This document shows, in pieces, positions 1-61,702 of a stretch of 64,000 nucleotides of DNA. Each line of letters opens with the position of its first letter. The stretch's first letter is position 1. The notes beneath the pieces were generated by a model that was not told the DNA's origin, searched no databases, and saw nothing but the letters and a program-made list of their open reading frames with translations. The translations under genes were made by a program, and so were the position numbers. The stretch comes from Caecitellus pseudoparvulus (taxonomy: Eukaryota > Protista > Bigyra: Bicosoecida), in the NCBI GenBank assembly GCA_965644315.1, contig CBFFRQ010000196.1, positions 8,081 to 72,080 of the forward strand. The letters are read 5' to 3'.

Positions 1-102
1 GCTGTGGCGTCCTACATGTGCAGAGGTGCATTGTGGGGCGCCCGTGTGACGCTCAAGCTGTACGGTGCCAAGCTGTGCCGAGGTGAAATGCATTGTGAGT
101 TG
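1..102 (+). mobile_element. 3' end of telomeric retroelement, family A (continues off the left edge)
   Basis: Carries the same terminal motifs as units B-D (GCTGTGG-initiated hairpin, CAAGCTGTA, AATGCATTG) and ends directly in CTAACC repeats; primary sequence is diverged from B, C and D. Confidence 0.8.
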
Positions 103-158
103 CTAACCTAACCTAACCCTAACCCTAACCCTAACCCTAACCCTAACCCTAACCTAAC
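103..158 (+). repeat. Telomeric repeat linker (CCCTAA)n, 56 bp: 6 perfect CCCTAA plus CCTAA variants
   Basis: ctaa-cctaa-cctaa-(ccctaa)6-cctaa-c; C-rich strand of TTAGGG. Confidence 0.97.
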
Positions 159-219
159 TTTCCAAATGTCAAGCTAATCACAAGTTGTGAAGTGCTAACA
201 TTGCCTAATCCAGGCGCTC

Positions 220-2466
220 GTGCACCCAAGTGTGGTGTTGCACAGTGCTTGCTGGTTGGGTGGTGCGCACCGGGGCGGGGTAGTGCGAATTCCGCACACC
301 ATCGCACCGTGGCTCCCAGTTTGCGCCCTCGGTCGGGGCATGCACCTGGGATCGACATCAAAAGCATCATTGACAAGCATCATGAACGCCCAAGTGGATC
401 AAGTCCTGGGGGTCCTCTTCGTGGAGGGGTGCCTGAAGCGCAAGCAAGTGCTCGGCCCCAGAACAGGTGTCTTCACTGACATGCCACGTCGGGGTGCCGC
501 ACGCACCTTCGAGCTTGGAGGACCCCTGCCCAAGACTGATCATGATAGTTCATCTTCGGCACGGGACATGTGGCTCGAGGTCTATGGGGAAGCCGCCGAA
601 CGGCTGATCCCAGGGCTGAGTGCGGAATTCGGCAACGCCAATGCGGCCCTGCGCCAGGGACCCACCGGATCGCCAACCATCCTCGTCACGCTCGGAAGTG
701 AGGGTGATTCACCAACAGTGGCACGTCAACTTCGCATTCTTGCTGCTCAAGAGGACGACTTCGCCATTCGAGTCGGCCAAGGTGGGTTCGTCGCCGTGGC
801 CTACACCAACACCAAGCAGTTCGCATCGGCGAAGGCGAAAGTGAAGGTGAAGGCCCACCCCACCGCCATCCAAGTGGCCCACCAAGTGACCAAGGAAGCA
901 ACCGAAATCGCCTGCCAGTCAGGTGATGTTGCCAAGGTCATGTGCCTCGTTAGGTCCCACTTCGACCATGGCCCCGTGCCAGCCCAAGCCGTCCGTCCCA
1001 GTGTCAGACAATCCGTCCCCTCCGAGGGTGATGCACCTGTCGACACCAAGACACCATCGACCTGGACTGACACTCAGCTCGACAAGGCACCGAAGAAGAA
1101 GAAGACCCGTCGAGGCAAGCGAGGAAAGGGCAAGTCAGCCGGACGATCCCTCACCTTCGAGGACGTCTTCATCAAGAACGTCCGGCCACCTGCACCTCGA
1201 CCAACCTCACCACCTGCCACCCAAGGCTCACCCAAAGATACCGTCACCACCCCTGTGGTGCATGCCATGTTGCCTTCATCAAGGGTGCAGCGGGGCGTCG
1301 ACCGCAAGTGGCCGTCCCCCACCCCGTCGGGCGAGGCAAGCCCCGAGGTGCACCGGTATCGGCCGTCTGCAGCAGCAGCATGGGAGGTGATCACAAGGGT
1401 GGTGCCTCTTCATGACAGTGTGCGGACACCCGAGCACCTGGCCGAGTACCCCATCAAGCCTGGCCCTCTGGCCGACCTGCTGTCATCGACCCACGTGTAC
1501 TCTAACGTGGGGGGGCGGGCCTGTGTCCAGGCCTGTCTCGAGACGGCAGCAGGGGAGAGGGTCTTCGAGGCTGGGGACCTCCTCCTACTCCAGCATGCAG
1601 CCACCATCAACGCTGCCCAGCTTGCCTTCAAGCACATGGTCAGGCAGCTGGAGGGGGTGGTCAGTGACTCGTCCAGCTCGGACATCATGGACGTCGGCCA
1701 GAAGCCACCCTCCCCCTTCCGCTCAGACGGGCAACGGGTGGCCGTCTTCCGCAACATGCTGCACCAGCACTCGCCGGATGACACCTTCCTGGCCCCAGGT
1801 ACACCACCAGTCCTGCTTCCCGGCCTGCACCTGCTCATCGACCGCATCAACCAAGGGTACCGTGCCCCAGCCGGGCATGATGACCTTGGCCAGGCCGGCG
1901 TCGACCCCAGCCAGGTTGATGAAGAGGGTGACCAAGAGGGGCACCTCGACGGAGTGCTGTATGCCTTCGCACTTCGAGAGGTGTGGACCGACAACACGGC
2001 CCATCTGCAGCTCATCCTCGTCGACCATGATCGAGGCAAGCTGGTGCTGTGGAACCCCGACATCCCTGACCTCCATGACGAGCTGCCCCTGCACAAGTGC
2101 ATGACCCGGCTGGCAGCCGAAGGCATCAACGTCTTGTACCGGATCTGGACCACACCCGAGGCGGGCAGTCCAGCACCCTTCCGGGACAGGCTTCGAGGGG
2201 CACTCCAGTCTCTCCGAGATGACTTCCCCCCCCTGCCTCACAAGGCCACCGACGGCACCGTGCACCCCCAGACCCTCATCGCTGGCAAGGGCACAAGGGT
2301 GGCCATGCCTCATGGGCGGATGACCCGACAGCAGGCCGCCACCCTGGAGGCTGAGGTCAAGGACCCCCTCAAGCGGCTGGTGCCTGAAGACGGCGAGGGT
2401 CGCCTGCCCAAGGTCAAGGATGTGCCCCACATCTCGATCGGGCAGATGGGTGGACGCCTGATGTAA
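220..2466 (+). CDS. ORF1/Gag-like protein of element B1 (748 codons from GTG; first in-frame ATGs at 340 and 382)
   Basis: Intronless ORF with basic KKKKTRRGKRGKGK tract and Pro-rich linker; no YxDD/RT motifs seen; Gag-like role inferred from context only. Confidence 0.7.
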   Translation: MHPSVVLHSACWLGGAHRGGVVRIPHTIAPWLPVCALGRGMHLGSTSKASLTSIMNAQVDQVLGVLFVEGCLKRKQVLGPRTGVFTDMPRRGAARTFELGGPLPKTDHDSSSSARDMWLEVYGEAAERLIPGLSAEFGNANAALRQGPTGSPTILVTLGSEGDSPTVARQLRILAAQEDDFAIRVGQGGFVAVAYTNTKQFASAKAKVKVKAHPTAIQVAHQVTKEATEIACQSGDVAKVMCLVRSHFDHGPVPAQAVRPSVRQSVPSEGDAPVDTKTPSTWTDTQLDKAPKKKKTRRGKRGKGKSAGRSLTFEDVFIKNVRPPAPRPTSPPATQGSPKDTVTTPVVHAMLPSSRVQRGVDRKWPSPTPSGEASPEVHRYRPSAAAAWEVITRVVPLHDSVRTPEHLAEYPIKPGPLADLLSSTHVYSNVGGRACVQACLETAAGERVFEAGDLLLLQHAATINAAQLAFKHMVRQLEGVVSDSSSSDIMDVGQKPPSPFRSDGQRVAVFRNMLHQHSPDDTFLAPGTPPVLLPGLHLLIDRINQGYRAPAGHDDLGQAGVDPSQVDEEGDQEGHLDGVLYAFALREVWTDNTAHLQLILVDHDRGKLVLWNPDIPDLHDELPLHKCMTRLAAEGINVLYRIWTTPEAGSPAPFRDRLRGALQSLRDDFPPLPHKATDGTVHPQTLIAGKGTRVAMPHGRMTRQQAATLEAEVKDPLKRLVPEDGEGRLPKVKDVPHISIGQMGGRLM

Positions 2467-2886
2467 GTCACCTGTGGGGGCATACTCCCTGTGCCACACA
2501 TGACTGAAGCTTTGTGTCGCGACCGACGCACATAGCTGACATCGGACATTGGAAAGTCCAACCCAACCTCACCATCACCAACCCAACATCGATACCAACA
2601 CATCAGGACTCGGCTCAGTGGAAGGGGAAGGCACTTGCAGCAAGATCTGTGAGGCCGCCCCCAAACCTGAGCCGAAGGGACAGCCGGGCTGGGTCGTGTG
2701 CTTGCATCTCAGCAACACCCAGTCCGTGTCGAGTCCATATCCTCCAGCCCACACCGCCACCCAAGCCAAGCAAGTCGGGTCTCCACCCCTGGACATCGGA
2801 CCGAGACGGACGAGACTGGACTGGACGGACAAGACAAGAGTGGACCGAGACCTGGACCTACACCTCAAGACCATCCCACCGGGGCG

Positions 2887-3081
2887 GGCGCTGAAGCGCC
2901 AAGACAGACGGCGACTTATACAACGGACACGAGTCTGTGCTAGTCGCAAAGCCGTGCAAGCGGTGCCGTCGTGGTGTCTGTGTCACTGCATTCTGTTGTG
3001 GCGCAGGTGGCACCACATGTCCAAGCCCAAGCTGTACCATGATGTAGCCTGCATGGAGGCAATCTGCAATGCATTGAGTAG
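2887..3081 (+). ncRNA. Conserved structured 3'-terminal RNA element (B1)
   Basis: Stems ggcgc/gcgcc, gacggc/gccgtc, gact/agtc, acggac/gtctgt, gccgt-GCAA-gcggt, gtggtgtc/ggcaccac, ccatg/catgg; these covary with copies in A, C and D. Confidence 0.75.
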
Positions 3082-3098
3082 CTAACCCTAACCCAAAA
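3082..3098 (+). repeat. Telomeric linker CTAACCCTAACCC plus AAAA between B1 and B2
   Basis: gagtag|ctaaccctaaccc-aaaa|actttcc. Confidence 0.9.
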
Positions 3099-3161
3099 AC
3101 TTTCCAAATGTCAAGCTAATCACAAGTTGTGAAGTGCTAACATTGCCTAATCCAGGCGCTC

Positions 3162-5408
3162 GTGCACCCAAGTGTGGTGTTGCACAGTGCTTGCTGGTTG
3201 GGTGGTGCGCACCGGGGCGGGGTAGTGCGAATTCCGCACACCATCGCACCGTGGCTCCCAGTTTGCGCCCTCGGTCGGGGCATGCACCTGGGATCGACAT
3301 CAAAAGCATCATTGACAAGCATCATGAACGCCCAAGTGGATCAAGTCCTGGGGGTCCTCTTCGTGGAGGGGTGCCTGAAGCGCAAGCAAGTGCTCGGCCC
3401 CAGAACAGGTGTCTTCACTGACATGCCACGTCGGGGTGCCGCACGCACCTTCGAGCTTGGAGGACCCCTGCCCAAGACTGATCATGATAGTTCATCTTCG
3501 GCACGGGACATGTGGCTCGAGGTCTATGGGGAAGCCGCCGAACGGCTGATCCCAGGGCTGAGTGCGGAATTCGGCAACGCCAATGCGGCCCTGCGCCAGG
3601 GACCCACCGGATCGCCAACCATCCTCGTCACGCTCGGAAGTGAGGGTGATTCACCAACAGTGGCACGTCAACTTCGCATTCTTGCTGCTCAAGAGGACGA
3701 CTTCGCCATTCGAGTCGGCCAAGGTGGGTTCGTCGCCGTGGCCTACACCAACACCAAGCAGTTCGCATCGGCGAAGGCGAAAGTGAAGGTGAAGGCCCAC
3801 CCCACCGCCATCCAAGTGGCCCACCAAGTGACCAAGGAAGCAACCGAAATCGCCTGCCAGTCAGGTGATGTTGCCAAGGTCATGTGCCTCGTTAGGTCCC
3901 ACTTCGACCATGGCCCCGTGCCAGCCCAAGCCGTCCGTCCCAGTGTCAGACAATCCGTCCCCTCCGAGGGTGATGCACCTGTCGACACCAAGACACCATC
4001 GACCTGGACTGACACTCAGCTCGACAAGGCACCGAAGAAGAAGAAGACCCGTCGAGGCAAGCGAGGAAAGGGCAAGTCAGCCGGACGATCCCTCACCTTC
4101 GAGGACGTCTTCATCAAGAACGTCCGGCCACCTGCACCTCGACCAACCTCACCACCTGCCACCCAAGGCTCACCCAAAGATACCGTCACCACCCCTGTGG
4201 TGCATGCCATGTTGCCTTCATCAAGGGTGCAGCGGGGCGTCGACCGCAAGTGGCCGTCCCCCACCCCGTCGGGCGAGGCAAGCCCCGAGGTGCACCGGTA
4301 TCGGCCGTCTGCAGCAGCAGCATGGGAGGTGATCACAAGGGTGGTGCCTCTTCATGACAGTGTGCGGACACCCGAGCACCTGGCCGAGTACCCCATCAAG
4401 CCTGGCCCTCTGGCCGACCTGCTGTCATCGACCCACGTGTACTCTAACGTGGGGGGGCGGGCCTGTGTCCAGGCCTGTCTCGAGACGGCAGCAGGGGAGA
4501 GGGTCTTCGAGGCTGGGGACCTCCTCCTACTCCAGCATGCAGCCACCATCAACGCTGCCCAGCTTGCCTTCAAGCACATGGTCAGGCAGCTGGAGGGGGT
4601 GGTCAGTGACTCGTCCAGCTCGGACATCATGGACGTCGGCCAGAAGCCACCCTCCCCCTTCCGCTCAGACGGGCAACGGGTGGCCGTCTTCCGCAACATG
4701 CTGCACCAGCACTCGCCGGATGACACCTTCCTGGCCCCAGGTACACCACCAGTCCTGCTTCCCGGCCTGCACCTGCTCATCGACCGCATCAACCAAGGGT
4801 ACCGTGCCCCAGCCGGGCATGATGACCTTGGCCAGGCCGGCGTCGACCCCAGCCAGGTTGATGAAGAGGGTGACCAAGAGGGGCACCTCGACGGAGTGCT
4901 GTATGCCTTCGCACTTCGAGAGGTGTGGACCGACAACACGGCCCATCTGCAGCTCATCCTCGTCGACCATGATCGAGGCAAGCTGGTGCTGTGGAACCCC
5001 GACATCCCTGACCTCCATGACGAGCTGCCCCTGCACAAGTGCATGACCCGGCTGGCAGCCGAAGGCATCAACGTCTTGTACCGGATCTGGACCACACCCG
5101 AGGCGGGCAGTCCAGCACCCTTCCGGGACAGGCTTCGAGGGGCACTCCAGTCTCTCCGAGATGACTTCCCCCCCCTGCCTCACAAGGCCACCGACGGCAC
5201 CGTGCACCCCCAGACCCTCATCGCTGGCAAGGGCACAAGGGTGGCCATGCCTCATGGGCGGATGACCCGACAGCAGGCCGCCACCCTGGAGGCTGAGGTC
5301 AAGGACCCCCTCAAGCGGCTGGTGCCTGAAGACGGCGAGGGTCGCCTGCCCAAGGTCAAGGATGTGCCCCACATCTCGATCGGGCAGATGGGTGGACGCC
5401 TGATGTAA
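3162..5408 (+). CDS. ORF1/Gag-like protein of element B2
   Basis: Translation identical to 220..2466. Confidence 0.7.
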   Translation: MHPSVVLHSACWLGGAHRGGVVRIPHTIAPWLPVCALGRGMHLGSTSKASLTSIMNAQVDQVLGVLFVEGCLKRKQVLGPRTGVFTDMPRRGAARTFELGGPLPKTDHDSSSSARDMWLEVYGEAAERLIPGLSAEFGNANAALRQGPTGSPTILVTLGSEGDSPTVARQLRILAAQEDDFAIRVGQGGFVAVAYTNTKQFASAKAKVKVKAHPTAIQVAHQVTKEATEIACQSGDVAKVMCLVRSHFDHGPVPAQAVRPSVRQSVPSEGDAPVDTKTPSTWTDTQLDKAPKKKKTRRGKRGKGKSAGRSLTFEDVFIKNVRPPAPRPTSPPATQGSPKDTVTTPVVHAMLPSSRVQRGVDRKWPSPTPSGEASPEVHRYRPSAAAAWEVITRVVPLHDSVRTPEHLAEYPIKPGPLADLLSSTHVYSNVGGRACVQACLETAAGERVFEAGDLLLLQHAATINAAQLAFKHMVRQLEGVVSDSSSSDIMDVGQKPPSPFRSDGQRVAVFRNMLHQHSPDDTFLAPGTPPVLLPGLHLLIDRINQGYRAPAGHDDLGQAGVDPSQVDEEGDQEGHLDGVLYAFALREVWTDNTAHLQLILVDHDRGKLVLWNPDIPDLHDELPLHKCMTRLAAEGINVLYRIWTTPEAGSPAPFRDRLRGALQSLRDDFPPLPHKATDGTVHPQTLIAGKGTRVAMPHGRMTRQQAATLEAEVKDPLKRLVPEDGEGRLPKVKDVPHISIGQMGGRLM

Positions 5409-5828
5409 GTCACCTGTGGGGGCATACTCCCTGTGCCACACATGACTGAAGCTTTGTGTCGCGACCGACGCACATAGCTGACATCGGACATTGGAAAGTC
5501 CAACCCAACCTCACCATCACCAACCCAACATCGATACCAACACATCAGGACTCGGCTCAGTGGAAGGGGAAGGCACTTGCAGCAAGATCTGTGAGGCCGC
5601 CCCCAAACCTGAGCCGAAGGGACAGCCGGGCTGGGTCGTGTGCTTGCATCTCAGCAACACCCAGTCCGTGTCGAGTCCATATCCTCCAGCCCACACCGCC
5701 ACCCAAGCCAAGCAAGTCGGGTCTCCACCCCTGGACATCGGACCGAGACGGACGAGACTGGACTGGACGGACAAGACAAGAGTGGACCGAGACCTGGACC
5801 TACACCTCAAGACCATCCCACCGGGGCG

Positions 5829-6023
5829 GGCGCTGAAGCGCCAAGACAGACGGCGACTTATACAACGGACACGAGTCTGTGCTAGTCGCAAAGCCGTGCA
5901 AGCGGTGCCGTCGTGGTGTCTGTGTCACTGCATTCTGTTGTGGCGCAGGTGGCACCACATGTCCAAGCCCAAGCTGTACCATGATGTAGCCTGCATGGAG
6001 GCAATCTGCAATGCATTGAGTAG
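5829..6023 (+). ncRNA. Conserved structured 3'-terminal RNA element (B2)
   Basis: Same sequence as 2887..3081. Confidence 0.75.
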
Positions 6024-6035
6024 CTAACCCTAACC
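6024..6035 (+). repeat. Telomeric linker CTAACCCTAACC
   Basis: Between the B2 3' end and the truncated 5' end of C. Confidence 0.9.
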
Positions 6036-7994
6036 GCCACGGAGCGGCGGAAGCTCATCTGGCGATCCCGCTGGTTGAGGTCAGGGCAGTCCATGAAGGT
6101 CAAGGGGACACCCATCCAACGCACGAGCACCTACTCGTACTTGGGTGTCCCCCTGTCTGAAACTATCAGCCGAACCCGACTGCTTGCCACGAGGCAGGCC
6201 ACTCTGTCCTGCACTCGGGCTGGGTTCGGCTGCGGTGCCCTCCTCAGTAGTGCCTGGCTGAGTCCGATCCTGAAGCAGCGGATCGGCACTGCCTCCATCA
6301 ACAGTGCCGCCGACTACATCTTGGCGTCCCAGGTCAGCAACTCGGTGCTGCCTTTGCGGGACGTCGATCGTGGACTCGCCATCGCCTTCAGCAAGGCCCA
6401 GCTGGGGATGCAAAGCTCGCTGGCACGCATGCACAACTATGCGAAGCTTGCTGTGTGCGGCGTCTTGCCAACACACATCCGGGCGACAAAACTCCGCAGC
6501 AACATCTTCATGAAGCTGCTGAAGAATGTCCAAGTGCCCACCCCCGTGGCCAAGGCGCTGTCCATCAGCCTGCGCCAAGCCCTGGACCTGCTCCCCTCCC
6601 CCCTGGACATGGCCGGCATCTTCCTGGCCAATGTCCGCCTCGACAGGCCAGGCGCCGGAGGCATCCCAGATCCATGGGCCTTACACGGTCTACTCGACCT
6701 CTGGCTCCTTGGATGCCTCCCTGACCGCGCACGCCTGGAGGCTGTGTGCCTGGAGCCGCCGCCTGACTCGGCCCCAGACGCACACGGGGTCGACATCACC
6801 GCTGGGATGGACCCCGCCCCCCCCAAGATCCAGCTGCTTGGACTCGCGGCGGCGGAGTCCTCGGATCTGTCCGCGGCCCCCCAGTTCCCGGACACCACCC
6901 CCTGGGCCACTCGGCAACGCGTCGTCGCCTCCTTCCTTCATGTGGCCCAGACGGTCAAGTGCAGTGCAGTTGGCTACACTCCCACGGGGGAGATGAAGGC
7001 CACCAGGCGTCCGAAGGAGTACCACATCGGTGTGGGCGCTCGCTTCTTCGCCTGGCTGCACCCGATCCCTTCCTCTGTGAACCCAGTCTTCTGGGTCCAC
7101 GAAGGCGATCAGGAGAGACGTGTGAAGGTGCACTTGTGGCAGACGCTTCAAGTGTTCAACGGGGATGACACCCCGACACTGTTCAGCGCCTGCCCCCTGT
7201 GCCACAGCGTCTCATGGTGCAGCCTGCAGGAGCACGTTCTCTTGGACTGCCCCCACCACGCCCTGGTCCCTGCGAGAAGGTCCGCCCTGTCCGAGGTGCG
7301 GACCTTCCTGTCCAGATCCAATGATGCAGTGAGGGGGGTCATCAACTGCCAGTACCTTGAAGTACCCCCCTCACTGCTGGATGCCGTCGTCCACGCCGAC
7401 GAAGGCCGCTTGTTGGGCCGCCCGTGTCGCCTGCTGCTGCTGCGACTGCTGCTGTGCGGCCAGTGGCCCCATCGGTGGGGCCAGCCCCCGGCACAGCAGC
7501 CTTGGAGTCCCGAGGCAGCCGCGGTCCTGAGTAACCCTCATGTCACTCTCCGCGGCTCCTCGGGTCCACTCCGCCCCCCCAAGTACTGGCGCGAGGCCCT
7601 GGTAGCCGCCACGGGCCTCGCGGTATCTGCGTGGGACGCGGTGGTGACGTGCATGCTCAGCCCTACCTCTCGTGCTGACCGTCACATCCAGAGGCACGCC
7701 CGGTACCTCTGGTGGGCGGCGCATGGACGAACGTGTCCTCTTCCAGGTTACTCGGCTCCTGATCCGAGTACTGTGAGGAAGCATGTGCGGGACGTGAAGA
7801 CGCGGCGCTTCGAGCGCACTTACTTTCCTGTCAAGTCCCCTCGTCGGCCGCCTCGCTCCTTCACGAGGCAGGCCACCTTGCTCGACTTCAGGCTGGCACG
7901 GCCGGAAGTCCACGAGGAACCTCCGGCACCGTCGATGTCATCCTCGGCGTCGTCCTCTGGGTCGTCCTTGAAGTGTCCATCTGACTCTGAGTAG
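6036..7994 (+). CDS. C-terminal part of non-LTR ORF2 (end of RT/thumb plus CCHC zinc finger), 5'-truncated
   Basis: GTPIQRTSTYSYLGVPL matches the YxYLG motif at the end of LINE RT domains; CPLC...EHVLLDCPH matches the LINE C-terminal CCHC finger; frame is open back to the telomeric junction; catalytic YxDD absent (would lie upstream of the truncation). Confidence 0.8.
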   Translation, partial: ATERRKLIWRSRWLRSGQSMKVKGTPIQRTSTYSYLGVPLSETISRTRLLATRQATLSCTRAGFGCGALLSSAWLSPILKQRIGTASINSAADYILASQVSNSVLPLRDVDRGLAIAFSKAQLGMQSSLARMHNYAKLAVCGVLPTHIRATKLRSNIFMKLLKNVQVPTPVAKALSISLRQALDLLPSPLDMAGIFLANVRLDRPGAGGIPDPWALHGLLDLWLLGCLPDRARLEAVCLEPPPDSAPDAHGVDITAGMDPAPPKIQLLGLAAAESSDLSAAPQFPDTTPWATRQRVVASFLHVAQTVKCSAVGYTPTGEMKATRRPKEYHIGVGARFFAWLHPIPSSVNPVFWVHEGDQERRVKVHLWQTLQVFNGDDTPTLFSACPLCHSVSWCSLQEHVLLDCPHHALVPARRSALSEVRTFLSRSNDAVRGVINCQYLEVPPSLLDAVVHADEGRLLGRPCRLLLLRLLLCGQWPHRWGQPPAQQPWSPEAAAVLSNPHVTLRGSSGPLRPPKYWREALVAATGLAVSAWDAVVTCMLSPTSRADRHIQRHARYLWWAAHGRTCPLPGYSAPDPSTVRKHVRDVKTRRFERTYFPVKSPRRPPRSFTRQATLLDFRLARPEVHEEPPAPSMSSSASSSGSSLKCPSDSE

Positions 7995-8636
7995 CGGGCG
8001 ATGTGTGCAGGACGCGGCGCGAGGCGGTGCAAGCTTACGGCGTGGCGTGGTGACAACCACGGTCGTGCCTGAGCGAAGTGCGAGAGCAGGGTGATGTGAT
8101 GTTCTTGATCGATGATGAAACCTGTGGAAAGTTGGAGAATGTGGTGAAGAATATGCCCAGTATACTCACATGTTGGCTCGGGGTCCACGTGCAGCTCGAG
8201 ATAGATTCCTGTGACGGAGCGCGCGGAATTTGGCAGGGTGAACACGCGGGCGCGCGGGGAAGCGTTGCAGGCGGGGCGCACCGGTCCTCTGGGCCTTGAT
8301 TGATGAAGTGACTGGATAATCTGTGAAGAAAGGGAGGTGTTCTTGGTGTTCTTGGTACGCGGGGGGGCGTTGTTCCGACGGTGCGCGCTGTACCACCGGC
8401 GTGGTGCAGTGCAACACCGTCGTGAAACGCCACCCGAAGGCGGCCACCGAGGCTCAGGACAGCGCGCAGTGGCCCCAGGCACACGTTCAGTGCCTGGCAA
8501 GGGCCAGGAGAAGCGGGGGGTTTCTGAATTATGAAACGAAGTGTGGACTTGGACGAAGCAGGAGTGGACCCGGCCCCCTCTGGCTCAGCCGACTGAGCCG
8601 AGAGGGCGCGGGAGGGACAGTTCAGCACGTATGGGC

Positions 8637-8834
8637 GGGCGCGGGCGCGCCCTAGCAAGCGGCGGCTTATACAACGGACGTATGTCCGTGATGGCTGCAG
8701 ACCCACGAGAGTGGGAGCCGCTGTGGTGCCTACTACAGTGCATTCGTGTGCTGTGGTACGCAAGGCACCACGAGTGATGCCCAAGCTGTACCGTGCAAGA
8801 GTGTGCGGAGGCAAGTTGCAATGCATTGAGTGAG
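8637..8834 (+). ncRNA. Conserved structured 3'-terminal RNA element (C)
   Basis: gggcgc/gcgccc, agcggc/gccgct, acggac/gtccgt, cccac-GAGA-gtggg, gtggtgcct/aggcaccac, tactacagtgca-TTCG-tgtgctgtggta, ccgtgca/tgtgcgg. Confidence 0.78.
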
Positions 8835-8841
8835 CTAACCC
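8835..8841 (+). repeat. Single telomeric linker CTAACCC
   Basis: gagtgag|ctaaccc. Confidence 0.75.
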
Positions 8842-9099
8842 CCCAAGAGACCGAGCTCTGGCCCCCTTGCGGGCATGTGGACCTTCTTTCGAAGGGGCGG
8901 GCGTTGAAACGCCCTAGCGAAGCGGCGGCTTATACAACGGACTCACGTCTGTGCTGGCTGCAGATCCATTTACATGGTAGCCGCTGTGGTGTACACCGGA
9001 GCGCACTCGTGTGCGACGGTGAGCAGGACACCACGTGTGATGCCCCAGCTGCACCGCGCCTGTGGCAAGCGTGGAAGCGAATTGCAATGCATTGACTGT
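8842..9099 (+). mobile_element. 3' stub (258 bp) of telomeric retroelement, family D
   Basis: Contains GCGGCGGCTTATACAACGGAC...CAATGCATTG and ends in telomeric repeats; innermost unit of the array. Confidence 0.8.
8899..9099 (+). ncRNA. Conserved structured 3'-terminal RNA element (D)
   Basis: gggcgt-TGAA-acgccc, agcggc/gccgct, acggac/gtctgt, ccat/atgg, gtggtgt/acaccac, caccg-ga-gcgca-CTCG-tgtgc-ga-cggtg, ccgcgc/gcgtgg. Confidence 0.75.
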
Positions 9100-9117
9100 C
9101 TAACCCCTAACCCCTAA
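9100..9117 (+). repeat. Innermost variant telomeric repeats (CTAA-CCCCTAA-CCCCTAA) at the chromosome-healing junction
   Basis: Abuts a gene copy truncated relative to its paralog at ~13662. Confidence 0.85.
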
Positions 9118-10572: not shown

Positions 10573-12918
10573 ATGGTGCGTGGGTGTAGGCACGGCGCCT
10601 CGCTTTCGCCAGCACTTGCGACAAAGCGTGTCGCACACACTGCACGGCACACAGCGCCCTGCCCCTCCCCGACGCCTCAGGCAGCAGCAACAGGACAGGT
10701 CACGGAGGGCAGTGCAGCAGCTACTCCAGGCGTCGATGACACACACGCTGAGGCGGTGGCGGCATGCTTGCGCAAGATGCAGTGCTTGCCGGGCAGCGTC
10801 ATGGACCACGGCCCAGCACTGCGAGGACTGGCAGCCATTGGGCGTGGCGAAGCGCCTGTTGCAGGTGATGACGCCCCATCGGCCATGAGCCTGGTGGAGC
10901 TGGAGGCTGCACTGCGTGATGCGGGGAGTGCGCTGTTGGAGCAGGCTGGGCTGTTGGCGGGGCAGCGTGAGCGAGGTGGTGTGTGTGCTGCGCTGCAGTA
11001 CCTGTCGTTCCGGTGCTTCTGCGCGGTGGATGTGCTTCATCAAGCGGCATCTGGTGTGGGTGTTGATGCGGTGCCGGGGGGCGAAGCACTGTGGGGCGCC
11101 ATTGTGGGTGCTTGGGGCAGTGTACGGGCCGGTGTGAACGTAGAGGGTGCGCTGGCTGACCTGACGCGATGGTGGCAAGGCTTCATAGTGGAGGATTCGA
11201 TTGTGGCTCGTGGGGTTGGCTCCGTCACACATGATGCCGGTGGCGAGGCAGCGATGGATGCGGCTCTGGCTGGCATGCGTCAGCAGGCTGGTTGGCTGCG
11301 AGGCGAAGCGGCAGGCGAGTTGACGAGTGAGAGTGCTGCGGAGCACTTGGAGTGTGCTGCGAGTGCGGTGGAAGAGTTGCGTGGGCTGTTGGGGTGTGCG
11401 CCGGTGATGAGTGGTCGGAGGGTGAAGGCTGTGGATGGCTTGGACTTGTCGGGCGGCTTGGGGTGCATGAACGGCAAGGGTGTGAGTGTGTACAGTGGGA
11501 GGGTTGAGATCGTGGATGAGGATGTGGGTGGAGCTGGGGATGTGGAGCAGTGGGCAGCAAGTGTGGAGGGGGGTGCGAGGGCGCTTGCCACGAGTGTTGG
11601 CGCTGTGAAGCGTGTTCAAGCGGCTCGCATCGCCCATGGCCTGCCGCGGATGGCGCAGACTCCACGCAAAGTCGCTATGGCACACATTTGTGGAGCTGGC
11701 AGGGCTGATGAGCCGGTTGGCGAGAGGAGCAGTGTCACAGTGCAAGTGCAGTGTGAGGCGGGTTGGCCGCTGAGGGTGTTCCTGGAGGATGAAGCGTGGG
11801 GCGATGTTGGGCTGGATGTGAAGCAGCGTGTGGCTGTGAAGGTGCTGGGTGTGTGTGCTGTGGCGGAGGCGTGCGGAGTGAGTCTGAGTGGTGTGGGTGT
11901 GGGGAGCTTTGTGGTGGTGGGTGTGGGGAGTGGCAGTGTGGGTGACCTTGTGGCCGCACTGGATGGGGGTGAGTGTGAGGTGGTATTGAGTGCGTGTGGC
12001 GGTGTGTGGGGCTTAGATCGCACTGAAGGCGGCAACCGTGATGTGAAGGGTGTGTTAAGTGTGCTGCGTGAGGTGCTTGGTGTGGGAGGTGGGGCCTTGG
12101 GTGGCGGATCGGGCGTTGGGTCGAGCTTCGTCGGCAGCGGTGAAGGTGGCGAACATGTATTGTCGAGCGCGTTGGAGGTGTTGGAGCGGGGAGGGAGTGG
12201 TTGCTGCATGGGTGCATACGCGGTGGCATGTGAAGGAAGTGGGGGTGGAGTGGGGCGTTTGTCAGGTGTGGAAAGTGCGGTGCGGGGTGTGCTTGATGGT
12301 GAGCAGGCAGCTGCTGCGGCAGGTCAGGCTGAGGCAGCTCAAGCTGAGGCTGTACCGGCTACAGAGTCGGAGGTTGCTGCCGAGCAAGTGAAGTTAAGCG
12401 AGGAGAACACCACAGCGTTTGTGGAAGCGTGCAAGGATGGGGAGCTTGCGAGAGTGCGCGAGTTGCTTTCATTGACGGGGGATGAGGCAGTGGATGTACA
12501 TGCGGAAGGAAATGTTGAGATCTGGCCAAGGGTTTGCAGACAGGGCCCTGAGGCTGGCTTCCGATGGGCCTGCGCCAGGGGCCGCACAGACATCGTGCGT
12601 GAGCTGCTGGACCTGACTGGGGCGCGGGCAGTGGATGTGCATGCGGCGGATGTGTTTGGACCCGAGGCCGCCTTCCGAGGCGCATGCGAGAATGGCCACA
12701 CAGACGTTGTGCGTGAGCTGCTGGCCCTCACTGGGGCGCGGGCAGTGGATGTGCACGCGGCCGCTTGGGATGGACCTGAGGCTGGCTTCCGATGGGCATG
12801 CCGCAATGGCCGCACAGACATCGTGCGTGAGCTGCTGGGTCTCACTGGGCATCGCAGGATCCCAGACAGCGTGCGACAGGAAGCCACCAAGTTTGAGAGC
12901 TTGAAGGAGTTGATTTGA
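10573..12918 (+). CDS. Ankyrin-repeat protein (N-cap plus 3 repeats of 38 aa) with Gly/Val-rich N-terminal region
   Basis: GPEAxFRxACxxGxTDxVRELLxLTGARAVDVHA repeats. Confidence 0.8.
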   Translation: MVRGCRHGASLSPALATKRVAHTARHTAPCPSPTPQAAATGQVTEGSAAATPGVDDTHAEAVAACLRKMQCLPGSVMDHGPALRGLAAIGRGEAPVAGDDAPSAMSLVELEAALRDAGSALLEQAGLLAGQRERGGVCAALQYLSFRCFCAVDVLHQAASGVGVDAVPGGEALWGAIVGAWGSVRAGVNVEGALADLTRWWQGFIVEDSIVARGVGSVTHDAGGEAAMDAALAGMRQQAGWLRGEAAGELTSESAAEHLECAASAVEELRGLLGCAPVMSGRRVKAVDGLDLSGGLGCMNGKGVSVYSGRVEIVDEDVGGAGDVEQWAASVEGGARALATSVGAVKRVQAARIAHGLPRMAQTPRKVAMAHICGAGRADEPVGERSSVTVQVQCEAGWPLRVFLEDEAWGDVGLDVKQRVAVKVLGVCAVAEACGVSLSGVGVGSFVVVGVGSGSVGDLVAALDGGECEVVLSACGGVWGLDRTEGGNRDVKGVLSVLREVLGVGGGALGGGSGVGSSFVGSGEGGEHVLSSALEVLERGGSGCCMGAYAVACEGSGGGVGRLSGVESAVRGVLDGEQAAAAAGQAEAAQAEAVPATESEVAAEQVKLSEENTTAFVEACKDGELARVRELLSLTGDEAVDVHAEGNVEIWPRVCRQGPEAGFRWACARGRTDIVRELLDLTGARAVDVHAADVFGPEAAFRGACENGHTDVVRELLALTGARAVDVHAAAWDGPEAGFRWACRNGRTDIVRELLGLTGHRRIPDSVRQEATKFESLKELI

Positions 12919-13165
12919 TCCCAGGCCCCAAGCACAGACCAATGCACCATTCGACAAACCTGACACGCACCTCAGACCAGCACACATGCCCCACCTCCAC
13001 CTCTCCCCATACCGCACCACAATCCACCGCACCACAATCCACCGCACACACCACACCGCATCACACCTCATCACCATTCCCACGCACCCCACGCCCCCCT
13101 CACCTTCACTGCACTCCCCTCCGCACGGCACCAACGCCTCCCACACCCGCTTCCTGCCCTTCCCA

Positions 13166-14508
13166 CTACCGCCTCCGCAGCACCTTCAGCTTGTCCATGC
13201 GCTTCGCCACGTGGTGCTTCTTCGCCTGCGCCTTCTGGCTCCGACACTCTGCAGCTGCTGGCGGGTTCACCACCGCCTCCTGCGCCACCTGCTTCGCCCG
13301 CCGCTCCTTCGCTGCCGCCCTGGCCCGCCGCTCGCTGTTGTAGGCTGTCAAGAACACATTTGCACCCATGGCACCCTGCACACCCTCCAAGACCTCGGAT
13401 GCAAAGGCGCCTGCCTCTGCTGCAGCGGCCGCCTGTTGTGCCTGCTCTGACCAGGATGGCGCGTCGGCCAGGCGGGGGTCGCTGGCCACGTGCTCTGCCG
13501 CCTGCACAATGCGGAACACTACCCGCGCCACCGGCACCACGTAGCGCTGCAGGTCCGCCTGCGGCAAGTGCCCAGCCATGCCCCCGAACACGTTCAGCGC
13601 CGTGGTGGCCGCCGGCCCGCCCTGCTGCACTGCCGTGTTGCTGAGGCGCTGCAGCAGCCAGAACAGCGGATCACGTGCACTACTGCCGTCGTCATCTTGG
13701 GCGGTGTGTGTGGAGGGCGGGCTGTCACGCTGCACCGCCTTGCCGCCCACCACCTCCACGCCACCCACGAGCAGGGTGGACTTGCCGGCCAAGCGAGCCG
13801 TGCGCTGGGCGAGGTGGGGCGGGATGGTGTTGCGGGAGCTGGGCGGCGTCGTGGCGTACAGCCCCACCACCGTGAACAGCAGCACCGGCGCCAAAGCCGT
13901 GCCCTGCTCCCTGCTCAGTGCCCCGTCCGCCAGCTGCACACAGGCTGCCCGGGCCAGGGCGAACAGGCGCTCATCCCCAGCCAGCCACGCCGCCACGCCA
14001 GGCAGTGGGGGGCAGCTCCCCACACTCGCCACTGCCACGGTGTTCAGGGCGGCGCCCAGCCACCTGGCTGCCGGCTCCCGTACCTGCCGCTCTCGCCGTC
14101 GCGGTTGAACACGACGATGCTGTCTCCAGCCGCGCCTGCCACGCGCTTGCCCTGCGAAAGTCGCCGTGGAAGGTGCAAATATGGTTGCCACGTCGGCTGC
14201 GCCGGCACTCACGTCCTCCGACACTGCCACGTGCGTGATGAAGGTGCTGCCCGAAAGGAACGCAGTGCCTTTCGCCAGCTCCACTTTGTTGGTGCCAGTG
14301 TTCTCCACGTGCACCATGGTCTGTGGAGCACAGCAGCGGCGGTTGCGGAATTTGCACGCCTCTCGCAGCCGTCGAATGCCCGCCTGCGCACCAGAGCATT
14401 CTCAATGCCAGTCTTGGAGCTGTCACCGCCTGAAACAGCCAGAGTACCACCTGCGAGGGGCACCAGTTGGAAGACGGGTGCCCCCATGGAGGCGCTGGAC
14501 AGCGCCAT
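13166..14508 (-). CDS. Chimeric gene: SEC12/PREB-like N-terminus fused to a UTP20-like C-terminal fragment (intron 14321..14391)
   Basis: PVFQLVPLAGGTLAVSGGDSSKTGIENAL resembles the Sec12 K-loop blade; ASEVLEGVQGAMGANVFLTAYNSERR...AVVNPPAAA...KRMDKLK resembles the UTP20 C-terminus; far too short for either full protein. Confidence 0.55.
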
Positions 14509-15118
14509 GCCTTTGTTGTGGCTTGGGACAGAGCAGTCGCCACCACGCCAATGAATATCGAGTGGGCAAGGAAGGGTGACGGAGCCACACTGCCAGACAC
14601 GACAAGGCCGCAACCCTTACACGCAAAAGTGCGGGCACAGCAGAGCGGGCGGTTTTGCCCCGTCCAGTGCCGTGTATGGACAGCGCTGCTCGGAGCGCAC
14701 CAGTCCACTCCCTCCATCGCACTCCGCGCCTTGGCGCAGCTCCCGTCAGCACTCGAACGGGGATCTTTCGGATGTCCAGATAGCTTGTTCCGCACCCTTC
14801 CTGCTGAGATGATGGGCACCGCATCGAGCGGAGCGGGGCACACCTGACATGCCTGCTACCAAAATGCACCTCAATTATATCCCAAACACCTGTGATGTCA
14901 CGGGACATTTGCACATCAGCGTGCCTGGCGTCTTGTCTTTAGTCTAGGCCGCCACAGGTGAGCGTGCACTGGTGCAAGTGCGGAAGTTGCTCCCTCGTAC
15001 ACGTCAGCTGCGACAGCGCCTTCCCACGGCACCAACACACGCGTCCACTGCCATCACCCCGCAGGAGTCGGCTTTACAGCACAGCTACGCCTGACTAGAC
15101 CCCCTGCCATCCATCGCC

Positions 15119-18100
15119 ATGGTGCGTGGGTGTGGGCATGGTGCCTCGCTTTCGCCAGCACTTGCGACAAAGCGTGTCGCACACACACCACAGCACACAG
15201 CGCCCTGCCCCTCCCCGACGCCACAGGCAGCAGCAATAGGACAAGCCACGGAGGGCAGTGGAGCAGCTACTCCAGGCATCGACGACGCACAGGCTGAGGT
15301 TGTGGCGGCATGCTTGCGCAAGGTGAAATGCTTGCCGGGCAGCGTCATGGACCACGGCCCAGCACTGCGAGGACTGGCAGCCATTGGGCGTGGCGAAGCG
15401 CCTGTCGCAGGTGATGCCCCATCGGCCATGAGCCTGGTGGAGCTGGAGGCTGCACTGCGCGATGCGGGGAGTGCGCTGTTGGAGCAGGCTGGGCTGTTGG
15501 CGGGGCAGCGTGAGCGAGGTGGTGTGTGTGCTGCGCTGCAGTACCTGTCGTTCCGGTGCTTCTGCGCGGTGGATGTGCTTCATCAAGCGGCATCTGGTGT
15601 GGGTGTTGATGCGGTGCCGGGGGGCGAAGCACTGTGGGGCGCCATTGTGGGTGCTTGGGGCAGTGTACGGGCCGGTGTGAACGTAGAGGGTGCGCTGGCT
15701 GACCTGACGCGATGGTGGCAAGGCTTTGAGGGGGGGGAGGTGGATGTAGCTGGTGAGGATGGCCCCGTCACACATGATGCTGGTGGTGAGGCAGCGGCGG
15801 ATGCGGCTTTGGCCGGCATGCGTCAGCAAGCTGAGTGGCTGCGAGGCGAGGCGGCAGGGGAGCTGAGGAGTGAGAGTGCTGCGGAGCACTTGGAGAGTGC
15901 TGCGAGTGCAGTGGAGGAGCTACGTGGGCTGTTGGGGTGTGCGCCGGTGATGAGTGGTCGGAAGGTGAAGGCTGTGGATGGCTTGGACTTGCCGGGCGGC
16001 TTGGAGTGTCTGAACGGCAAGGGTGTGAGCGTGTACAGTGGACGGGTTGAGATCGTGGATGAGGATGTGGGTGGAGCTGTGGATGTGGAGCAGTGGGCAG
16101 GGAGTGTGGAGGCGGGTGCGGCAGCGCTTGTCACGAGTGTTGGCGCCGTGAAGCGTGGCGAAGCGACTCGCATCGCCCGTGGACTGCCGCGGATGGCGCA
16201 GACACCACGCAAAGCAGCACTGGCACATATCTGTGGAGCGGGCAGGGCTGATGAGCCACTCGGCCAGAGGAGCATGGTGACGGTGCAGGTGCAGTGTGAG
16301 GCGGGGTGGCCGCTGGGGTTGTTCCTGGAGGATGAAGCTTGGGGCGATGTTGGGCTGGAGGTGAAGCAGCGCGTGGCTGTGAGGGTGTTGGGTGTGTGTG
16401 CTGTGGCGGAGGCGTGTGGAGTGAGTCTGAGTGGTGTGGGTGTGGGGAGCTTTGTGGTGGTGGGTGTGGGGAGTGGCAGTGTGGGGGATCTGGTGGGCGC
16501 ACTGGATGGGGGTGGGTGTGAGGTGGTGTTGAGTGCATGTGGCGGTGTGTGGGGCACAGGTCGCTCTGATGGTGGCAGCAGTGAGGGTGGTGGTGTGTTG
16601 AGTGTGCTGCGTGGGGTGCTTGGTGTGGCAGGTGGTGCGTTGGGTGGCGGATCGGGCGTTGGGTCAAGCTTGGTGGGGAGCGGTGAAGGTGGCGAACATT
16701 CACTGTCGGGTGCGTTGGAGGTGTTGACGCGAGAACGGAATGGTTGCTGCATGGGTGCATATGCGATGGCGTGTGAGGGAAGTGGGGGTGGACTGGGTCA
16801 TCTGGAAGGTGTGGAAAGTGCTGTGCGGGGTTTGCTTGATGAGGAGCAGGCAGGTGGTGCGGCGGGTCAGGCGGAGACAGCTGACGCAGAGGCTGTACCG
16901 GCTACAGAGTTGGAGATTGCTGCCGAGCAAGTGAAGTTCAGCGAGGAGAACACCACAGCGTTTGTGGAAGCGTGCAAGGAGGGCAAACTTGCCAGGGCGC
17001 GTGAGCTGCTGTCTTTGACGGGGGATGAGGCAGTGGACGTGCACGCGGCGGGATTTGTTCAGGTGGGGCCATTTCGCAGAAGTGATGGTCCTGAGGCTGC
17101 ATTCCGGTGGGCATGCTTCAATGGCCACACAGACATCGTGCGTGAGCTGCTGGGCCTGACTGGGGCGCGGGAGGTGGATGTGCATGCGGTGGATTGGTTT
17201 GGACCTGAGCCAGCCTTCCGAGTGGCATGCACCGAGGGCCACACCGACATCGTGCGTGAGCTTCTGGCTCTGACTGGTGCGCGGGAAGTGGATGTACACG
17301 CGGCAGATGAGGATGGACCTGAGGCCGCCTTCCGATGGGCATGCCGTGAAGGCCATTCAGACATCGTGTGTGTGCTGCTGGGCCTGACTGGGGCAAGGGA
17401 AGTGGATGTGCACGCAGCGGATGAGGATGGACCTGAGGCTGCCTTCCGATGGGCATGCCGTGAAGGTCATTCAGACATTGTGTGTGAGCTGTTGGGCCTG
17501 ACTGGAGTCAGGGCAGTGGATGTTCACGCAGGGGATGGTTATGGTCTTGAGGCTGCCTTCCGAAACGCATGTTTTTGGGGCCACATAGATATCGTGCGTG
17601 AGCTGCTGACGCTCACTGATGCAAGGGAAGTGGATGTGCATGCGGCGGATGATGATGGACCCGAGGCCGGCTTTCGAGAGGCATGCCATGCTGGCCACCC
17701 AGACATTATGCGTGAGCTACTTGCCCTCACCGGCGCGCGGGCAGTGGATGTGCACGCGGCGGATGGGGATGGACCAGAGGCCGCCTTCCGAGCAGCATGC
17801 GGAAGTGGCCGCGCAGACGTTGTGCGTGAGCTGCTGGCCCTGACCGGGGCGCGGGCAGTGGATGTGCACGCGGCGGATGGGGATGGACCAGAGGCCGCCT
17901 TCCGAGCAGCATGCGGAAGTGGCCGCGCAGACGTTGTGCGTGAGCTGCTGGCCCTGACCGGGGCGCGGGCAGTGGATGTGCATGCGGCGGATGGGGGTGG
18001 ACCTGAAGCAGCCTTCCGAAACGCATGCCGGGGTGGCCACATTGATGTCGTGCGTGAGCTGCTGGGCCTGACTGGGGCGCGGGAAGTGAATGTACACGCG

Positions 18101-18565
18101 GATGACGCGGCTGGGCCAGAGGCCGCCTTCCGAGGGGCGTGTGTCAATGATCATGTTGATGTCGTGCATGAGCTGCTGGGCCTGTCTGGGGCGCGGGAAG
18201 TGGATGTTCATGTTGCGGCATGGGGTGGACCTGAGGCTGCCTTCCGTTTGGCATGCGAGGAAGGTCACATTGACGTCGTGATTGAGCTGCTGGCCCTCAC
18301 AGGGGCAAGGGAGGTGGATGTGCGCGTTGGCGATGATTATGGACCTGAGGCTGCCTTCCGTGGGGCATGCGCTAATGGTTACCCTGACATTTTGCGCGAG
18401 CTGCTTGGTCTCACTGGTCACCGTGCGATCCCAGCCCAAGTCTGGCAAGAAAAGGGGGAGTCCATTGCCCAAGCAGCGCGTGATGCAGTGTGGGCTGGTA
18501 CAAGCACTCGGCATGGGCGACGTGGGATGCTCTTGCTGAGATCTCGTGGTGCGGGGCGTGCGTGA
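15119..18565 (+). CDS. Ankyrin-repeat protein (N-cap plus 12 repeats of 38 aa/114 bp)
   Basis: Twelve GPEAAFRxACxxGHxDxVRELL-type repeats; paralog of 10573..12918. Confidence 0.85.
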   Translation: MVRGCGHGASLSPALATKRVAHTPQHTAPCPSPTPQAAAIGQATEGSGAATPGIDDAQAEVVAACLRKVKCLPGSVMDHGPALRGLAAIGRGEAPVAGDAPSAMSLVELEAALRDAGSALLEQAGLLAGQRERGGVCAALQYLSFRCFCAVDVLHQAASGVGVDAVPGGEALWGAIVGAWGSVRAGVNVEGALADLTRWWQGFEGGEVDVAGEDGPVTHDAGGEAAADAALAGMRQQAEWLRGEAAGELRSESAAEHLESAASAVEELRGLLGCAPVMSGRKVKAVDGLDLPGGLECLNGKGVSVYSGRVEIVDEDVGGAVDVEQWAGSVEAGAAALVTSVGAVKRGEATRIARGLPRMAQTPRKAALAHICGAGRADEPLGQRSMVTVQVQCEAGWPLGLFLEDEAWGDVGLEVKQRVAVRVLGVCAVAEACGVSLSGVGVGSFVVVGVGSGSVGDLVGALDGGGCEVVLSACGGVWGTGRSDGGSSEGGGVLSVLRGVLGVAGGALGGGSGVGSSLVGSGEGGEHSLSGALEVLTRERNGCCMGAYAMACEGSGGGLGHLEGVESAVRGLLDEEQAGGAAGQAETADAEAVPATELEIAAEQVKFSEENTTAFVEACKEGKLARARELLSLTGDEAVDVHAAGFVQVGPFRRSDGPEAAFRWACFNGHTDIVRELLGLTGAREVDVHAVDWFGPEPAFRVACTEGHTDIVRELLALTGAREVDVHAADEDGPEAAFRWACREGHSDIVCVLLGLTGAREVDVHAADEDGPEAAFRWACREGHSDIVCELLGLTGVRAVDVHAGDGYGLEAAFRNACFWGHIDIVRELLTLTDAREVDVHAADDDGPEAGFREACHAGHPDIMRELLALTGARAVDVHAADGDGPEAAFRAACGSGRADVVRELLALTGARAVDVHAADGDGPEAAFRAACGSGRADVVRELLALTGARAVDVHAADGGGPEAAFRNACRGGHIDVVRELLGLTGAREVNVHADDAAGPEAAFRGACVNDHVDVVHELLGLSGAREVDVHVAAWGGPEAAFRLACEEGHIDVVIELLALTGAREVDVRVGDDYGPEAAFRGACANGYPDILRELLGLTGHRAIPAQVWQEKGESIAQAARDAVWAGTSTRHGRRGMLLLRSRGAGRA

Positions 18566-60500: not shown

Positions 60501-61702
60501 TGGCATCGTAGTCGAAGTTCGGGTCGAAGTCCAGGAACTGCACCGCCACGTCAGTGATGGTGTCCAGGTGCCCCGTCACCTCCGCGGGGCAGCGCAGGAC
60601 ACGAACGCCTCCAGCGCCTGGAAGCAGAGCCTCGCGCAGGTCGTTGCCGGCTGTCTCGTCATGGCCGCCTCGTCCTCCGCGTCCCCAATGCAGCCCAGGA
60701 ACAGAGGCACGAGTCTCCCCCAGATGCTGCCCCAGCCGGTACCCAACTGTGCGGGCGACGGCTGAGATGGTGCGAATGGCAGCCTGGCGCCCCTCGGCCG
60801 AGGAAGCCTTCTGCAGCAGGTCCAGGACGCGTGCGGGATTACCGTGCCCAGCTGCTCGTCATTGATGTGCTGGGACAGAGCCCCCATGGCGCTGGTGGCC
60901 CGGGCTTGCACACGTCACTCTCGCCGCCTTGCAGCGCTGCCAGCAGGACATCGATGGCGCGGTCGATGCTGGGAGGGGTCTTGTCCCCGAACCGCTTCAG
61001 CAGCTCCCGGGCGACCTGCAGGCAGTCCCGCTGCATGTCGAGGCCGCGCCTTCCGTGATGCCGCCCAGCATGCCAGGCAGCACCACCTTCACCAGCACTG
61101 CGCCGTGCGCCGGCGCCACCTGGGTGATGGCGTGCGTCATGCCGACGCAGTACACGTCGCGCATCTCCGCGCGCTCGCCGCTGCAGATGTGCTTCGTCAG
61201 GTTCGTGGCGACATCCTGCACCAGCTCTCCCCTGCGCGCCGCATCGCGGCCCTGCAGGCTGCGAAGGGCCAAGCGGCGACGCAGGGTGCGGCGGCTGCCG
61301 CGCAGGGCAGCAGGCGCACTAGCGCGAGCGCGCACACCACTTGACTGCTCCAGCCTGCACGTCTTGGCTGGGGTCGCTCTGCAAGCGGTCCAACACCAAG
61401 CTGCTGATCCTGTACGGAGCGACGGGTGAGGGGAAGGGTGCGGAGGCTCCTGCCCGCAGAAAGCGAGCCACCACGCCCGGGGAAGGAAGCTCACTTCTGC
61501 TGCATGCCAGGGTCCAGGGACCTGTCCTTCTCCAGCTCGTCACACAGATCGTCCGCAGCAACGGTTCGGACATCCTTGTCGTGGTTCACGGCCTGTGCAG
61601 CGCCGGGGCAGACAGCGTTCAGCACGTCTGTGTGCCCGCCACCACGCCTTGCCGCCGTACCTGCTCCAGCACAGTGCGCAAGTCCACGGCTCCTGCTGCC
61701 AT
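57541..61702 (-). CDS. CAND1: Cullin-associated NEDD8-dissociated protein 1 (multi-exon, several apparent frameshifts)
   Basis: DKDVRTVAADDL...DVQAGAVK, SWKVRR, DLDQEIKEMAI, VDVGPFKVDVDDGEALRKAAF (TIP120 C-terminus). Confidence 0.92.

Follow-up and report, generated by a model that had tools for sequence, protein, structure and literature searches.

The question raised by this locus is why retroelement families that stand head to tail in a telomeric array of the bicosoecid protist Caecitellus pseudoparvulus, and that have otherwise diverged, should end in one and the same elaborate RNA structure. The window analyzed here is a stretch of 64,000 nucleotides (nt; C196:8081-72080) from a 30.6-Mb assembly whose telomeres consist of TTAGGG repeats. 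The assembly has a 1.7-kb 18S sequence that appears to be of stramenopile, perhaps bicosoecid, type. The original prediction, made from the letters of this window alone, had placed a ~200-nt covarying RNA structure at the 3′ ends of all four families seen there, directly upstream of CUAACCC. It had proposed several roles: a reverse transcriptase (RT) loading signal that lets the RT-less element B be mobilized in trans, a ribozyme or processing signal, or a telomerase-RNA-like scaffold.

Fold of the 3′-terminal RNA domain

Four full copies and one partial copy of the structure were confirmed where they had been reported, all on the plus strand. The full copies are two of B type (2881..3086 and 5823..6028), one of C type (8632..8839), and one of family D (8894-9104), while the 3′ half of a family A domain occupies 1..107 (full copy at L031:7992-8187). 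Seven family types, gathered from nine chromosome ends and one metagenomic contig and about 60-80% identical in pairwise comparisons, were aligned by sequence only, and a consensus structure was predicted with RNAalifold; further end types on C13, C38, C69, C171, and C207 stand outside this set. The resulting domain is ~205 nt long, comprises ten helices, and ends in CUAACC. In the first B copy, as delimited by RNAalifold and pair counts, a closing helix P0 (GRGC/GCYC; 2882-2885/3025-3028) is followed by hairpin 0 (2886-2901) and by P1 (2907-2912/2965-2970), which surrounds a three-way junction made of P2 with its TAYAAC internal loop (P2a, 2913-2916/2942-2945; P2b, 2923-2938), a GCRNA linker, and P3 (2951-2964). 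Next come the variable long P4 (base at 2971-2979/3008-3016), the distal part of which could not be aligned across types, and the two-part P5 (P5a, 3031-3033/3058-3060; P5b, 3037-3056). Downstream of P5 lie a conserved unpaired palindrome, (C)AATGCATT(G) (3067..3076), and the terminal CTAACC (3082..3087), complementary to the telomeric G-strand. Twenty-five unpaired positions are invariant among the seven types, including the TAYAAC loop, the GCRNA junction, AGCYG, and UGCAU. A short RCA/UGU helix is more tentative, as it shows no two-sided change, and a possible 3-bp tertiary pair (GCR/UGC) occurs in 7/7 types, also without two-sided change.

Most of the predicted architecture held, since hairpin 0, P1, the three-way junction, the base of the long hairpin, and the last hairpin were all recovered across the seven types. 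The extent was broadly right, with a start placed about 5 nt too late, so that the closing helix was missed; the list of helices stood as far as it went and overlooked a GCY/RGY helix beneath the last hairpin along with the tentative RCA/UGU helix. The TATACA strand had been called invariant, whereas only TA(C/T)AACGG is conserved across families. The domain does end next to a telomeric motif, but the common end is CUAACC rather than CUAACCC, the run to a third C not always being complete. The claimed spacing of 166-170 nt came close to the 167, 167, 169, and 171 nt measured from CTTATAC to CTAACC.

Under the consensus structure, 97% of cells form pairs, compared with 30-44% for slid-partner controls, and 25/52 pairs show two-sided change. 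As the structure came from the same alignment, null alignments (300 column-shuffled and 300 tree-based with substitutions re-dealt; our own nulls, not R-scape) were each refolded. The consensus energy was -75.2, versus -22.9 ± 3.3 for the column shuffle and -21.6 ± 4.1 for the tree-based null, clean two-sided pairs numbered 22 versus 3.2-3.4, and the covariation term reached 8.5 versus under 0.5. The real energy, covariation term, and two-sided pair count were matched by 0/300 alignments in each null, which places the predicted covariation far above both. Among within-family variants held out from the alignment, 14 stem changes kept pairing, 4 broke it, and 28 changes fell in loops; in an apparently decayed copy lacking a telomeric end (L029), all 4 changed stems were broken. 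Furthermore, G-U outnumbered A-C pairs by 44:2 and the antisense RNAalifold energy was only -52.7, so that the sense RNA is the folded strand. Single-sequence folding was only modestly better than that of shuffles (z = -0.9, -3.0, and -0.5), and the evidence is therefore comparative, not energetic. The fold of the ~205-nt domain is real.

An Rfam scan (E ≤ 10) of the window and of single copies returned only chance microRNA and long noncoding RNA matches, with no ribozyme and no telomerase RNA family among them. Neither the fold nor such elements in this kind of host were found described in the literature, most subscription papers and Repbase being outside our reach. Within Rfam and the literature searched, the domain is thus an undescribed cis-acting RNA motif, as had been predicted.

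Elements that carry the domain

Family A is represented by a 7.6-kb element upstream of the window with a single open reading frame (ORF) of 2207 codons, which encodes, in order, an ORF1-like part, an apurinic/apyrimidinic-type (APE) endonuclease, a non-LTR RT (LTR, long terminal repeat), and a CCHC finger. The endonuclease matched PF03372 slightly below the cut-off level (24.7 bits vs 24.5, E 2e-5), and its catalytic residues (Y, GDxN, D, and SDH) are invariant. The RT matched PF00078 (E 3e-29), contains YADD, and has R2 and L1 ORF2p as its top PDB matches; the finger, 3′ of the RT, reads C-x2-C...H-x4-C. Both LTRs and poly(A) are absent, and the element ends in CTAACC. The RTs of related families are 62-68% identical and form one supported clade (98/99). 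By this anatomy, we classify the domain carriers as poly(A)-less APE-type non-LTR retrotransposons.

Element B is present in the window as two identical copies (159..3086, with its ORF at 220-2466, and 3101..6028), the first separated from the family A end by interstitial (CTAACC)n repeats (103..158). Its ORF, which matches residues 19-722 of the A protein at 41% identity, covers just the ORF1-like part and breaks off at the border to APE; no APE or RT was found in it. B nevertheless occurs in 50+ copies at 99-100% identity, often adjoining terminal repeats and in some cases 5′-truncated, and its domain keeps the fold at only 60-71% identity to the autonomous types (30-40% different from each). 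The third element (6036..8839) is a 5′-truncated autonomous-type copy retaining the C-terminal 656 codons with the CCHC finger. Its body matches family E at 90-99% identity and the final ~300 nt match family C at 95-99%, a domain swap indicating that the module is exchangeable. Outside the last ~200 nt, the untranslated regions (UTRs) of different families have almost nothing in common. The array ends with a ~265-nt 5′-truncated family D copy (8840..9104) that is almost domain only.

Two further short features are shared between families. At the 5′ end, A and B share a block of ~94 nt at ~92% identity, despite the 41% ORF identity, and E and M have a similar one; this block (159-255 and 3101-3197) contains the telomere-like words CTAATC/CTAACA, shows no covariation, and is a candidate internal promoter. 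A small hairpin, CGTGGT-N4-ACCACG (8045..8061 in the third element), lies shortly 3′ of the stop codon. A, E, D, and the M copy of metagenomic origin have it, whereas B does not; it is possibly a signal specific to RT-coding RNAs. The family F 3′ UTR (L048:3360-4366) carries a ~154-bp tandem repeat in about 6.5 copies.

The protein encoded by B was also modeled. The C-terminal half of the ORF1-like part (window 1417-2409, +), present in B and in all full-length families, is predicted to adopt a papain-type cysteine protease fold (predicted local distance difference test, 82). Structural matches were nearly all papain-like, the best with Josephin-type deubiquitinases (Z 8.0), whereas Foldseek gave no match at E ≤ 0.001. 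The Cys, His, and Asn/Asp of the putative protease are invariant, and its target could be the single-ORF polyprotein, in a processing role, or proteins of the host. When B was compared with B in other samples, 18/21 listed differences in the protease part fell at third codon positions, which suggests selection on its ORF. A 1-nt indel near residue 399, seen in about 20 copies of B, represents either a subfamily or a homopolymer error.

Across the assembly, the 14-nt core gave 108 matches (2 for the control), the terminal pattern 190 (0 for the control), and the domain model at least 150 matches of 140-207 bits, lying in polarised telomeric arrays. Plus-strand matches all lie ≤24 kb from a contig start, and minus-strand matches fit a location at right contig ends. 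DNA of the window also occurs in marine metagenomes, where one close outside relative (P0025; L053/L054) has the whole domain between telomeric repeats; its type is also found in this genome and does not represent an independent species. The DNA pattern scan of metagenomes (38 matches) and viral contigs (2 matches) revealed no true copies, with a best model score of 13.9 bits and no RT nearby, and a protein scan of the viral contigs gave no match. Farther afield, the palindrome is the sole part clearly retained. A second RT clade (~40% identical; L033:1745-4650) ends in the same palindrome without the large domain, some of its ends lying far inside contigs (C18:155165 and C30:253725), and in remote metagenomic relatives nothing is retained beyond the palindrome and an end of telomeric or telomere-like sequence. 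Searching L059, L057, and the second clade with the domain model, filters off, gave no significant match, and a TATAAC-loop resemblance seen by eye in L059 was rejected (3.9 bits, E 1.6).

Proposed priming at the telomeric G-strand and its alternatives

The structure of copies and junctions offers clues to how these RNAs are reverse transcribed. In the nine chromosome ends, 17/17 partial copies retain the 3′ end, and some fragments measure no more than 15-95 nt; with every partial copy 3′-intact, down to such short fragments, reverse transcription would start at CUAACC. With every element's 5′ end facing the tip of the chromosome, only the G-strand can serve as primer. The C-run that comes first behind CTAA is irregular in 10/25 unique junctions versus 12/187 later runs (p=2e-5), irregular runs in terminal arrays being 5/1828, and this irregularity would be the expected outcome of register slips in RNA-primer pairing at that point. 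Repeat tracts between elements are short (mostly 0-3 repeats; median 12 nt; 27/35 ≤18 nt), and in some cases nothing but the element's own CTAACC separates it from a truncated neighbor. Priming at ends that are short or healed, nicking at the innermost repeats, or template jumping would each fit this pattern. A GGCAA(GG) piece follows CTAACC at six array positions (C32:11714, C32:14795, C43:15689, C140:2148, C151:25259, and C177:9387) and recurs in a distant metagenomic relative (L059:2230-2245). The telomerase RNA gene found no support as its source, as it offered one internal 11-mer at chance level with no extension.

We assign a probability of roughly 70% to the reading in which the domain is a structure-read module for RT recognition and priming that presents CUAACC to the telomeric G-strand, with B moving in trans. 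The last ~205 nt of the element RNA would fold into the multi-branched domain, which the RT polyprotein would bind by its shape and by a few invariant unpaired bases (the TAYAAC loop, the GCRNA junction, AGCYG, and UGCAU). Binding would set the terminal CUAACC on the 3′-OH of the G-strand, where cDNA synthesis would begin; this 3′-OH would come from APE nicking or from a chromosome end that is short or eroded. As recognition would depend on the fold, the domain of any family would work and the RT-less B would be copied in trans. The RT-loading signal suggested at the outset is thus the best reading; RT binding, RNA-primer pairing, trans-mobilization, and the choice of primer are what we infer from element anatomy and from precedent. 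The SART1 3′ UTR is necessary and sufficient for mobilization in trans, and its telomere-like RNA bases anneal to the target (PMC7265360); in R2, the 3′ UTR RNA bound by the proteins pairs with the target at the nick (PMC12503042); and stringent pairs of long and short interspersed nuclear elements (LINEs and SINEs) have structured tails in common (PMC3747384).

Several observations weigh against RT recognition and priming. The element was in none of the RNA runs searched. The seven types are paralogues from one species or close strains, even the metagenomic type M being found in this genome. Distant relatives keep only the palindrome and the telomeric end, which indicates that the full fold is dispensable in the wider lineage, and the fold exceeds known LINE 3′ signals in size, possibly a sign of a further role. 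Moreover, recombination between chromosome ends, a route taken by MoTeRs (PMC7367193), may account for the spread of some B copies.

In a first alternative, the domain would serve the formation or protection of the RNA 3′ end, by termination, processing, or an exonuclease block in place of poly(A), with RT recognition secondary. Poly(A) is indeed absent, head-to-tail elements would yield read-through transcripts that need a defined 3′ end, and a long-range helix closes the compact domain. Stability alone, however, leaves the 25 invariant unpaired positions and the fixed CUAACC spacing unexplained, and we consider this unlikely as the primary function; it is compatible with RT recognition, and both can hold. 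Rather improbable is also a catalytic or template-defining domain, be it a new ribozyme class or the guide of a LINE-type RT that primes on bare ends and repeats the motif. If true, the latter would be a telomerase-like ribonucleoprotein that arose from a non-LTR element in a host with a working TERT.

A self-cleaving ribozyme of a new class, cutting next to CUAACC to release unit-length RNA, would account for the size and complexity of the domain, its invariant junction and loop bases, and the possible GCR/UGC pair, and has an analogy in the hammerhead at the Terminon 3′ end (PMC6431247). The CUGANGA/GAAA hammerhead and hairpin-ribozyme cores are nevertheless absent in every family, Rfam returned no ribozyme, no fixed truncation point within the domain was seen among partial copies, and the tertiary pair lacks two-sided change; the proposal found no support and has little probability. 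We judge very unlikely the telomerase-like scaffold, in which the element RT would recopy CUAACC and add telomeric repeats itself. The short, irregular tracts between elements would agree with it, and template slippage is known in UnaL2 (PMC3747384), but irregularity seldom extends past the first repeat, long arrays consist of clean repeats, and the host has its own TERT gene (C77). A telomerase RNA is a stand-alone RNA with an internal template between 5′ and 3′ structure, whereas CUAACC is terminal here, on the end of a multi-copy, mRNA-like template that is itself copied and matches no telomerase RNA family; the proposed likeness was analogy only. Finally, action as DNA, as a 3′ promoter of the HeT-A kind that drives the following element (PMC5537684), is hardly credible despite the tandem arrays, the TATA-like letters, and the palindrome (the only possible DNA site), as the compensatory changes and the 44:2 G-U bias require a single sense strand and element 5′ ends have their own ~94-nt conserved block.

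On its inner side, the array closes with irregular repeats containing 4-C runs (9100..9117, +) and at 9117 meets sequence that looks like part of a gene. Directly inside it, 10573-18565 holds a pair of subtelomeric ankyrin-repeat genes, in which the repeat unit is 114 bp (38 aa). Farther in, at 57541-60579 (-), lies an intron-poor CAND1 gene whose closest relatives are 80%, 56%, and 54% identical, the 80% one coming from an ocean metagenome.

Known systems and significance

TRAS1 and SART1 of Bombyx (R1 clade) are likewise APE-type non-LTR elements within telomeric repeats. TRAS/SART elements have two ORFs and short stem-loops and end in poly(A), whereas the present elements mostly have one ORF and a ten-helix domain and end directly in CUAACC; they also form their own supported RT group (98/99), in a tree containing no named R1 references. 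The TRAS1 endonuclease nicks the G-strand, and the orientation of the present elements fits G-strand priming. The SART1 3′ UTR, with its stem-loops, is read in trans (PMC7265360). The endonuclease-deficient, Penelope-like Terminons/Athena also combine a 3′ RNA fold with reverse-complement telomeric repeats and 5′-truncated head-to-tail arrays (PMC6431247). The RT described here is, in contrast, of non-LTR type with an APE domain, which rules out a Penelope/Terminon identity, and the fold is not a hammerhead. The likeness is convergence, not membership.

In R2, a structured 3′ RNA is bound by the RT and the RNA end pairs with the nicked target (PMC12503042). R2 differs in its restriction-like endonuclease (RLE) and ribosomal DNA target, with no sign of a common fold. 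The MoTeR elements of Magnaporthe are of RLE type, and MoTeR2 is non-coding. Like the elements studied here, they pair an autonomous element with a smaller partner through a common 3′ sequence, with 5′ ends toward the chromosome end, 1-10 interstitial repeats, and many truncations (PMC7367193); a covarying 3′ domain in MoTeRs was not found described in the literature searched. The HeT-A/TART/TAHRE system of Drosophila also has an ORF1-only partner using the RT of another element, in polarised arrays (PMC5537684), but with poly(A) tails and no telomerase, while TERT and TTAGGG arrays persist here. Lastly, stringent LINE/SINE pairs of the UnaL2 type share a structured tail with compensatory changes, the non-autonomous element using the LINE RT (PMC3747384). 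Their signals are single small hairpins, in contrast to a domain of ~205 nt with several junctions; the mark of a stringent LINE signal, a conserved 3′-terminal structure with compensatory changes that is common to a non-autonomous partner, is found here all the same.

The kind of signal is therefore already known, both as a structured 3′ UTR for a stringent LINE RT and as a 3′ fold joined to reverse-complement telomeric repeats, and it is the RNA domain itself that is apparently undescribed. RNA complexity has been described as declining from group II introns to R2 to L1 (PMC12503042). As 3′ signals, LINEs usually have either poly(A) or a small hairpin; an APE-type element with a ten-helix domain opposes this trend. 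The Terminon solution of a fold followed by a telomeric anti-repeat has been reached here with a different RT and a different fold. Seven variants, an RT-less passenger, and a domain-swap chimera provide natural controls that make template choice and telomere priming directly testable, and the domain represents a compact tag that might steer RNA cargo to telomeric repeats.

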